A stretch of 64,000 nucleotides of DNA from Podarcis bocagei (lineage: Eukaryota). The stretch lies in the NCBI GenBank assembly GCA_964188305.1, contig OZ076892.1. One strand, given 5' to 3'. Below the pieces are notes generated by a model, which was not told the origin of the DNA, searched no databases, and worked only from the letters and a program-made list of their open reading frames with translations. Within the stretch, counting starts at the first letter, position 1. Every line of letters begins with the position of its first letter. Position numbers and translations under genes: made by a program. Below, piece by piece: positions 6,142 to 8,484 of the stretch.

Positions 6142-8137
6142 GGAAAGCTTGGGTTTTAGTCATCACTGGGCTAAATGTGAGTTTTCACATAGATTAGTAC
6201 TTCCTACACCTTACCCGGGCTGGTTCAGGTAGGATTTTGGGTTGATAATCATCCAGGTAAATTGTACCTTGTTCCATTAAATTGTAGTTTTCATATTATG
6301 ACTAAGCTTTTATAAGTGGTGGTTTCACAAAAGCAGGTTATTTTGATAGTTATAGCTATGCCACTCTCAATATAGTGGTGTGAATTGGTCTAAAGGAAGG
6401 AAGGACCAGCCTATATGGAAAGTTCAGCTCTCAGTATCACTCTTCCCTGTTGTTGTTTTTTAAAGATTTACAAGCACCTTGCATTTTTTTAAATTAAGCC
6501 AGTTGATGCATTCCAGTCATTCACTGTGGAGGGCCATGTGTCATGAAGTCATGAAGTTACATCTCTTCCTCCTTTCTCCTTTTGCCACCCCGTGCTCAGA
6601 AGAGCTTTATGGTTACCCAAATATGGCAGCCAACTTAGTGCCAGTGCCAGCATCTGGCTTGCTTTTGGGAGGCACGTTCTGAGCCCTCCACCATCCCCAT
6701 CACTCTCCTCCCTCCACTGGCCTGGTCTTATTTAAGGTATTTCTATGCTGGCTTTCAGACAGACATCACAAAGCAGTTTATATAAACATTATTACAATAA
6801 TAAGAACTGATTTTTTAAAAACAACAACCAATGCAAAAGGCAACTGTTTGCTTAGAAGAAGCTGTGATGGTAACTTCTTTTCTGCTCTGCTGCAGAGTGG
6901 GTGGTTCTGCAAAGATTTCCTGGGTGACAGTTAGAGGAGGGAGGGGCCACCACTGGCAGCTGGACCTGGGCAGCTTACTAGGCTGTGGGTTTCGTTTCCA
7001 CTCTCTTCAGAGCAAGATAATTCTTCATAGACCTTTATGTGCCATTTCCTCCATCAGTTGACAAGTTGCCATTTGTTTCGGGGCATAATGCTAATGGAAA
7101 CTGACTGGGCAACTTGAATTGTGTGGGGTTCTTTACCCTGCTTTTTGATAGTTAGATAACATTTTTATTCTTGGTAAGCTGGCTGGAATATCAGAATACA
7201 CTTATTTTCAAATAAAGCATAGTAGAAGAGGCAACATGGTATATGGAGGGCTAGGCTGAAATCCATAGGTGTCTGGCTCCTTGATTTTTATTTTTATTTT
7301 AAATGCCCACCACTTAGTAAACTGATCTTTTTTTTCAACTTGAGGCTGGCTCCTGGAGAAACAGAAATATTTTTCAAGCTCTATACTGGCTGCACACTCT
7401 ACCTGCATTTCCCAGTGACCCAACTCCCTTGCAGCTGGCTTTGGACTCACACAAAGGAGTGGGAAGGACTTTACTACTGGCTGCCTCAAGAAACCTCGCA
7501 TTGATCATTTGTATTAGGATGGCGGGGATCTGGATGCAGTTTGAGCCTCCTCCAGGAACTGTGTATACGTGCATTTCCCTCTCCCGCTTCAGTTTACTTT
7601 GAGAACAGCATGTTAGAATGCTTCAGGGTGGGGATAAATTGGAGGCAATTGCGGTTGATTAGCATTTTTGTAGCCCTGGGTATCTGAACGGGACAGAATT
7701 GCAGTACTGGGCGCCTTAGCAGATTTGAGGATAAGAAGCAAGTTTTCCCTCTTTGTAGCATCAGCTGTTGGGTTTAAGGCAGGGTTGGGGAACTGGGCTG
7801 GGACTGATGGGAGTTGGGAGTCCACCAGCATCTGGAGGGTACAGGTTCCCTTTCTGGTGCAGGGCACAAAGGTATGCCAAATGGGAAATTAGGATTGTTT
7901 GCCTGCTTGCAAAGGAACTTGTTTGCTAGTCACATTATTTTACAATTTCAATCCAAGTTGATGGGCTTGTATTTTTTCTTACCCTCCAGGCCTCCTTTTG
8001 GATGACCAATGTGTATCTTCAGTGATGATGTCAGACACTTACCCAGCAATTCCCTGCCCATTCCAGTTGTTACAGACTCATATGATGCAAAAGCTGCAAT
8101 TCAGGATCCCAAAAACATTGCTTTTAAAACTGTCTAG

Positions 8138-8484
8138 ATGATTGTCGTTGCTTTGGTTGTGTTCTATGCGAGCAGGAGCCTTCTCCAAGGTTTACGGCTG
8201 ACCCTTGAACAGCACATTCCCTGTTTGCTGCAAACCTTGGGGGCTAGCAGCATGGGCAACTCCTGTGTTTGTCGGGAAGACAGTGGGGTAGAAGACAATG
8301 CAGAATCCAGAAGTCGCCAGACAGAGAACAGCAGAGTGCCTGTATCGGACTCCAGGAGCCACCCGAGGGATCCAGTGAGGCCCCCCCGGCGGGGACGGGG
8401 GCCACATGAACCAAGAAGAAAAAAACATAACGTGGATGGATTAGTACTTGACACGCTAGCAGTGATTCGGACGTTGGTAGACAA
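8138..8484 (+). CDS. RSPRY1: RSPRY1 coding exon 1 (exon probably begins at 7990)
   Basis: [10 protein letters not shown]...MGNSCVCR...[17 protein letters not shown]; donor aa|gtaagt; upstream acceptor ttttttcttaccctccag| at 7989. Confidence 0.95.

Follow-up and report, generated by a model that had tools for sequence, protein, structure and literature searches.

The window analysed here is the whole of a 64,000-nucleotide stretch of Podarcis bocagei DNA (GenBank assembly GCA_964188305.1, contig OZ076892.1), read 5' to 3' on one strand and free of N. It carries exon 2 of RSPRY1 on the + strand, and the subject of this report is the untranslated part of that exon, a leader of 148 nt (7990-8137) within the 5' untranslated region (5'UTR), between the acceptor AG of intron 1 (7988-7989) and the ATG of the annotated start codon, Met1, at 8138. 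The exon, its acceptor and the reading frames in it lie on the + strand. The polypyrimidine tract and acceptor AG extend from 7968 to 7989; the junction is covered by RNA sequencing (RNA-seq) reads, and the acceptor column of the alignment is shared by squamates, alligator, bird and mammal. The coding part of the exon runs from 8138 to 8484 and is followed by a donor GT at 8485-8486. Met1 and codons 1-38 (8138-8251), in the context gtctagATGa, encode a hydrophobic N-terminus, and an in-frame ATG further downstream, Met39 (8252-8254, context agcagcATGg), opens the sequence MGNSCVCR.

The leader contains six upstream ATGs (uATGs; uAUGs in the mRNA), at 8002, 8009, 8025, 8028, 8082 and 8085. The upstream open reading frames (uORFs) that they open are uORF1 (8002-8025; 7 codons, MTNVYLQ), whose TGA overlaps the first ATG of uORF-B as TGATG; uORF-A (8009-8137; 42 codons), which is in the RSPRY1 frame and whose TAG (8135-8137) adjoins the Met1 ATG; and uORF-B (8025-8141; 38 codons), which begins with an ATGATG doublet and ends on a TGA inside the ATGA of Met1. 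Within uORF-B, ATG 8085 provides an internal start of 18 codons (8085-8141), or 19 codons if counted from ATG 8082. A near-invariant block, AAAAACATTGCTTTTAAAACTGTCTAGATGA (8108-8141), holds stops in three frames: TAA at 8125-8127, TAG at 8135-8137 and TGA at 8139-8141. The uATG positions, the uORF coordinates and the peptides had been listed in an earlier note made from the sequence alone, and all were confirmed. Only the uATGs at 8025, 8028 and 8085 have a purine at -3, and all three are in the uORF-B frame. As raw sequence, six ATGs in 148 nt are only mildly unusual, being reached or exceeded by about 5% of the 148-nt windows in the locus (mononucleotide-shuffle P = 0.018). On the evidence given below, the leader would probably act as a repressive uORF cluster that ends translation at the annotated start, possibly with a hand-over to Met39 of the kind described for C/EBP mRNAs.

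RNA evidence was taken from two stranded raw RNA-seq runs of a sister species, with reads 95-100% identical to the window. Coverage spans 7990-8484 and derives from + strand RNA only. At the 5' border, 11 reads from the two runs join an identical GC-rich exon 1 sequence (ending in GGAGCGGCTG, then AG) to the window at 7989|7990; at the 3' border, 9 reads leave the exon at 8484|8485 into TGATCAGGAACC, reading ..VD|NDQEP and matching the longer orthologues. Because spliced reads define both borders, exon 2 is 7990-8484. Bin-corrected depth is about 6.6 over 7990-8049 and 5.8-7.4 over 8050-8249, the leader thus being covered about as deeply as the coding part, and no internal start cluster within exon 2 was reported in the RNA-seq data of the two runs. 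The earlier note had allowed that 7990-8137 might be missing from the mature mRNA; spliced, stranded reads at exon depth place it there. A single base separates the leader of the sister species from that of the window (8048 A>C), and it lies in no uATG and no stop. Further differences in exon 2 between the window and the RNA-seq species, fixed or polymorphic, are found at 8236, 8251, 8300, 8365, 8371, 8419 and 8464. That at 8251 (C>A) is position -1 of Met39 and leaves the A at -3 and the G at +4 unaffected, and 8300 G>A is present in one of the two runs only.

A 30-nt exon 1 consensus built from the read ends could not be placed in the window even when up to 3 mismatches were allowed, and no CpG island was found in 1-7990. 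Exon 1 lies outside the window, more than 8 kb upstream. In a human table of splicing quantitative trait loci, junctions of the RSPRY1 first intron span about 18 kb, in keeping with a long intron 1. An N-terminal extension running from exon 1 through the leader was considered and is ruled out because all three frames close early in the leader: frame 0 at TGA 8003, frame 1 at TGA 8023 and 8026, and frame 2 at a TGA across the exon 1/2 joint.

Orthologues were located with the exon 2 peptide among vertebrate gene calls, and the genomic contigs were then compared; they are cited by number (L) where they need to be told apart. The contigs comprise three close reptile relatives (with the squamate-type CLLQT/SLG motif), Alligator mississippiensis, a bird, an amphibian-like sequence, three fishes and two mammals. 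The mammalian proteins are 90% and 89% identical to that of chimpanzee, so both mammals are non-primate, and no primate or human contig was used. The mammal with the full leader is called mammal A. A metagenome scan for further orthologues returned one spurious, high-GC bacterial contig (L019), which was discarded. Leader identity to the window is 0.83, 0.79 and 0.73 in the squamates, 0.73 in alligator, 0.71 in bird, 0.66 in mammal and 0.52 in amphibian (66-83% among the amniote orthologues), and conservation begins at the acceptor column.

Squamates, alligator, bird and amphibian share one sequence, TCTAGATGATTGT, at the junction of leader and start codon. In both mammals it reads TCTAAATGATTGT, the stop being preserved with its third base changed (TAG to TAA), and in fishes it reads TGAT-ATGAT, where a stop in another frame occupies -4 to -2. 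The overlapping TGA is not independent evidence, since all codons for the invariant Ile2 start with A. Stop-start overlaps of the types AUGA and UAAUG drive termination-reinitiation coupling in caliciviruses and influenza B, and the invariance of the junction in tetrapods would suit such a coupling here, in which ribosomes ending uORF-B on AUGA (or on UAG/UAA-AUG) would restart at Met1 and the uORF would deliver ribosomes to it. This is very improbable. In bird and in two of three fishes the longer uORF stops short of the AUG, by 10 nt or 1 nt; known cases of coupling need a dedicated upstream 18S-binding motif; and ribosomes on cellular mRNAs do not normally reinitiate at a start that follows a 38-codon ORF with zero spacing. 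Two of the three fishes (L011 and L018) also carry ATGATATGA, a two-codon uORF (Met-Ile-stop) that lies 5 nt before Met1 and overlaps the main ATG; in the third fish GTG replaces its upstream ATG. ATGATATGA is nearly a start-stop element, and the junction may have had this form ancestrally.

The uORFs themselves are conserved to different degrees. uORF-A has 42 codons only in this lizard and its sister species; in the five other sauropsid leaders it is closed after 10 codons by a TAA at -99. Its ATG is invariant in sauropsids and missing from mammal A. In four squamates and alligator uORF-B keeps its start and its end with no stop between them, except that in one of the squamates it begins at the second ATG. 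The homologous ORF of mammal A has 39 codons, starts with the same ATGATG and encodes a similar peptide; a 7-nt insertion near its end brings it into the RSPRY1 frame, and it stops on a TAA adjoining Met1. In bird the ATGATG is lost and there is a 1-nt deletion, and the ORF from the homologue of ATG 8085 ends on the conserved TAA at -13. ATG 8028 and ATG 8085 are the sole invariant uATGs in the six non-bird amniotes, in a leader of which 24% is otherwise invariant. ATG 8085, the best-conserved of all, is invariant in all seven amniote leaders and always opens an ORF of 13-19 codons that ends at -11 to +3 of Met1, although the stop it reaches lies in three different frames (the TGA in squamates and alligator, TAA at -13 in bird, TAA at -3 in mammal). 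Judged by these alignments, uORF-B is the conserved frame of the leader. Of the two long uORFs that the earlier note had described as ending on Met1, uORF-B is kept in the other squamates and alligator and the reach of uORF-A is lineage-specific; the leader alignment that the note had proposed bore out the placement of the stops and ATGs 8028 and 8085, and failed to bear out the length of uORF-A or a general presence of uORF1.

uORF1, with its 7 codons and TGATG overlap, is also present in alligator and mammal A, is lost in three squamates (L001, L002 and L004) and is altered in bird. Its position raises the alternative of delayed reinitiation as in ATF4. Ribosomes would translate uORF1 first, the 40S subunit would reload in time for ATG 8082/8085 and be discharged at Met1, and when ternary complex is scarce (eIF2-alpha phosphorylation) it would skip these uATGs and start at Met1 or Met39, making RSPRY1 stress-induced. 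A short uORF followed by a longer one overlapping the main start is the ATF4 layout, the same uORF1 recurs in the window, alligator and mammal A, and the distances from its stop are 57-60 nt to ATG 8082/8085 and 113 nt to Met1. Against these points, uORF1 is lost in three of the four squamate leaders and reads differently in bird, and the literature search returned no link of RSPRY1 to translation resistant to the integrated stress response, its sole match being a gene list. We regard this explanation as quite unlikely.

Beyond the amniotes, the amphibian and fish leaders are largely unalignable, and each has a uORF of 15-24 codons ending at -2, -1 or +3. Each of the 11 vertebrates whose upstream sequence is long enough carries a uORF that is 10 codons or longer and stops between -11 and +3 of Met1; shuffled leaders satisfy the same definition with a frequency of 0.25-0.41 per species when the junction is kept and 0.16-0.23 when fully shuffled. 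Among six amniotes, mammal included, 19 of the last 30 positions before the ATG are invariant as against 33 of the 118 further upstream. If the observed substitutions are placed at random, uORF-B stays open with a probability of 0.39-0.58 per lineage, the product being 0.029 with five sauropsid lineages treated as independent, which lends modest support to preservation of an open frame in these lineages. The uORF architecture is conserved far beyond lizards and therefore argues for a function, which most simply would be repression of a Met1 in weak context.

Coding constraint was measured as the ratio of nonsynonymous to synonymous differences (pN/pS), with Nei-Gojobori counts summed over the five sauropsids and the three frames compared. 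The leader gives 0.60 in the uORF-B frame as against 0.66 and 0.70 in the others (0.70 in frame 0), and no peptide-level selection on uORF-B is detectable in this comparison. Codons 1-38 from Met1, used as a positive control, give 0.31 in frame as against 1.15 and 0.80 off frame, and their N-terminal motif MIV..A..F.ASRSL is conserved from fishes to mammals. The proposal in the earlier note that the uORFs silence Met1 is too strong, because codons 1-38 evolve as coding sequence; by this pattern Met1 is used and matters, and would be throttled, not silenced. A published remark points the same way: human RSPRY1 is named there as a putative substrate of NatC (Met-Ile), and its level is said to shift when NatC is knocked out (PMC10611716).

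The same ratios bear on the idea that uORF-B is made for its product, a functional micropeptide of 38 amino acids or a self-stalling peptide. The reptile and mammal peptides are recognisably alike (e.g. MMLEI...LLET...M..PQ.Q..KT.L.KL). Yet pN/pS in the uORF-B frame resembles that of the other two frames, the bird is without the ORF, and the C-terminal residues differ between mammal and reptile because of the frame-shifting insertion. The note's secondary suggestion, read-through of the TAG to give a 43-residue N-terminal extension, falls with frame 0, which shows no coding signal (0.70) and in the five other sauropsid leaders meets a stop at -99; nor do TAG-A and TAA-A count as read-through contexts. 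Taken together, a functional peptide or a read-through extension is extremely unlikely.

A structured cis-regulatory RNA element was also considered and rejected: the leader has no Rfam match at E up to 1, RNAalifold finds a consensus fold of 5 pairs with zero covariation, and the minimum free energy of the single sequence is no better than that of shuffles (z-score +0.40). These results enter into a further explanation, by which the leader would be conserved for a non-translational reason (a protein or microRNA site, a splicing enhancer or a DNA element), with the uATGs and the open frame as passengers. The absence of frame-specific selection in the leader would fit it, as would the fact that conservation at the nucleotide level peaks in a 30-nt A/U-rich block, and that the bird retains the sequence but not uORF-B. 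Set against it are the coincidence of invariant positions with uATGs in the leader's 5' part; the fish leaders, which are unalignable and yet have the same architecture; and the failure to find an Rfam family, a covarying structure or a stable fold. The indels of bird and mammal, finally, shifted the frame while termination stayed at Met1, an observation that counts against conservation for such a reason and in favour of the uORFs. This explanation appears unlikely.

The two candidate starts differ in context. In 9 of 9 tetrapod sequences the context of Met1 is weak: position -3, where the stop codon begins, is U and position +4 is A. That of Met39 is strong in 9 of 9, position -3 being A and position +4 G, and reads accATGg in mammals. 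M39, G40, N41, C43 and C45 are invariant in 30 sequences. Met39 lies 114 nt beyond Met1, with 0-1 ATG between the two starts in tetrapods. In the window this is an out-of-frame ATG (tctATGc) that opens an ORF of 11 codons (8166-8201) ending 50 nt before Met39. It is found at the same place in four squamate leaders and bird and is missing in alligator and mammals; the ORF has 11 codons in four of these five leaders and 1 codon in L001, and its ATG could intercept or re-launch scanning ribosomes. Separately, the gene caller began three orthologues (L002, L003 and L010) at Met39 (78 amino acids) despite a Met1 and an open frame upstream, an echo of the better start signal at Met39 and not a loss of Met1.

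For the repressive reading favoured here, the following course of events is proposed. Scanning 43S complexes would meet the six uAUGs, of which those with a purine at -3 (8025, 8028 and 8085) are all in the uORF-B frame. Ribosomes starting there would run to the three-frame stop cluster (TAA -13, TAG -3, TGA +2) and end translation directly over the Met1 AUG, so that Met1 would be reached only by ribosomes that leak past every uAUG and would then present its conserved weak context. Since a post-termination 40S subunit would have zero distance in which to reload initiator tRNA before Met1, it would either be recycled, with net repression, or resume scanning and reinitiate at Met39 in its invariant strong context. 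In this way uORFs ending at or near Met1 would probably throttle a weak Met1, and ribosomes may pass to the stronger Met39, 38 codons downstream. We infer that the uORFs are translated, that Met1 is repressed by them and that any reinitiation takes place at Met39. Among mouse mRNAs, RSPRY1 is one of those with the largest drop in ribosome occupancy on loss of PTEN, as measured by translating ribosome affinity purification (log2 translation efficiency -1.71; PMC3463531), which is weak circumstantial support for translational control of the gene.

The closest known parallel is found in C/EBP alpha and beta. Their uORFs stop 7 and 4 nt short of the AUG of the long isoform, which is made by leaky scanning; reinitiation yields the short form (PMC11109482, citing Calkhoven et al. 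2000). In both systems the stop of a uORF lies only a few nucleotides from the first main AUG (-11 to +3 in RSPRY1), the first AUG is reachable by leaky scanning only, a downstream in-frame AUG gives an N-terminally shortened isoform (predicted in RSPRY1), and the arrangement is conserved across vertebrates. Unlike C/EBP, RSPRY1 has several nested uAUGs and uORFs of 18-38 codons in place of 6 and 12, and the stop adjoins or overlaps the AUG; the two predicted products would differ in a hydrophobic, signal-like as opposed to an MGNSC N-terminus and not in a transactivation domain. With ATF4 and ATF5 the leader shares a short 5' uORF followed by a longer one that overlaps the main start codon. 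It differs from them in that the overlap is 4 nt or none, that uORF1 overlaps the start of the second uORF (TGATG) where the ATF4/ATF5 uORF lies about 90 nt before it, and that uORF1 is not kept in all squamates. Compared with uORFs of conserved peptide (AMD1 MAGDIS, the CHOP uORF and the sets in PMC7530721), uORF-B is alike in holding its position for more than 300 My and in the similarity of its reptile and mammal peptides, and is unlike in having no frame-specific purifying selection, no conserved C-terminus and no intact frame in bird.

Several points weigh against repression with hand-over to Met39. Translation of the uORFs is itself a prediction. The uAUG count covers only the exon 2 part of the leader, exon 1 being outside the window, and the full leader is represented by one mammal (mammal A), the second mammal (L017) contributing 28 nt upstream. 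The fish acceptors are unmapped, so that some fish uATGs could be intronic. The conservation statistics are post hoc and the lineages are related, not independent; they are for these reasons indications and not proofs. Details of the arrangement are not fixed, as the bird without ATGATG and the three squamates without uORF1 illustrate, and the block just before the ATG is conserved at the nucleotide level without a codon pattern, which another constraint could explain. At 37-38 codons, uORF-B is long for efficient reinitiation, the C/EBP uORFs having 6 and 12; counted from ATG 8085 or from the mammalian ATG at -36 the uORF has 11-19 codons, and from the ATGATG doublet 37-39. The reinitiation branch is weakened because the nested uAUGs and the long ORF differ from C/EBP.

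Other features of the locus were recorded. Read-through of the exon 2 donor (GACAA|gtaagt, 8480-8490) adds Lys and then meets TAA, which explains many database proteins of 116-117 amino acids that end in ...LVDK, including the NCBI 'isoform X2' of turtle, alligator and birds; these are products of a retained intron or of a genomic ORF and not a distinct isoform. In intron 1, the stretches 6088-6120 and 7796-7840 match unrelated contigs of the RNA runs, one of them at depth 220, and three reads show a joint of opposite strands at 7796/7817; together with the intron 1 matches, this probably reflects fragments of a dispersed repeat or an inverted repeat. The only CpG-rich islands of the window lie at 29300-29900, 35100-36100, 41800-42400 and 52000-52500 (observed/expected CpG 0.8-0.9, GC 0.55-0.60). 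They may be promoters of downstream genes, and none is situated upstream of RSPRY1 exon 2.

A search of 8.4 million full texts never paired RSPRY1 with 'uORF', and the combination of RSPRY1 with 'upstream open reading' had as its sole match a review in which the gene stands only in a Gene Ontology table. An entry for RSPRY1 was not found in the readable text of catalogues of ORFs from ribosome profiling, by which its absence from them is not shown. RSPRY1 is a new, well-conserved case of the well-known class of uORF control, and its interest is gene-specific and not conceptual.

RSPRY1 is mutated in recessive spondyloepimetaphyseal dysplasia of the Faden-Alkuraya type. With a deeply conserved uORF cluster ending on the annotated start, its protein output is likely set at translation, and a 5'UTR variant may be pathogenic or act as a modifier where it adds or removes a uATG or one of the stops at the start codon. 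In papers RSPRY1 is called secreted on the strength of database annotation alone (PMC11817781). Which N-terminus is actually made, from Met1 or from Met39, deserves experimental definition. Much more tentatively, and with a low probability, translation of the uORFs could decide which of two forms of the protein is made from the one mRNA, one from Met1 with a hydrophobic, signal-like N-terminus ('secreted' in databases) and one from Met39, cytosolic with the N-terminus MGNSC, which could be N-acylated and membrane-anchored; the arrangement would be at least as old as tetrapods and, judged by architecture, as old as bony vertebrates. If this is true, the topology of a disease-linked RING ligase would be a translationally regulated variable, which would address the oddity of a 'secreted' RING E3.

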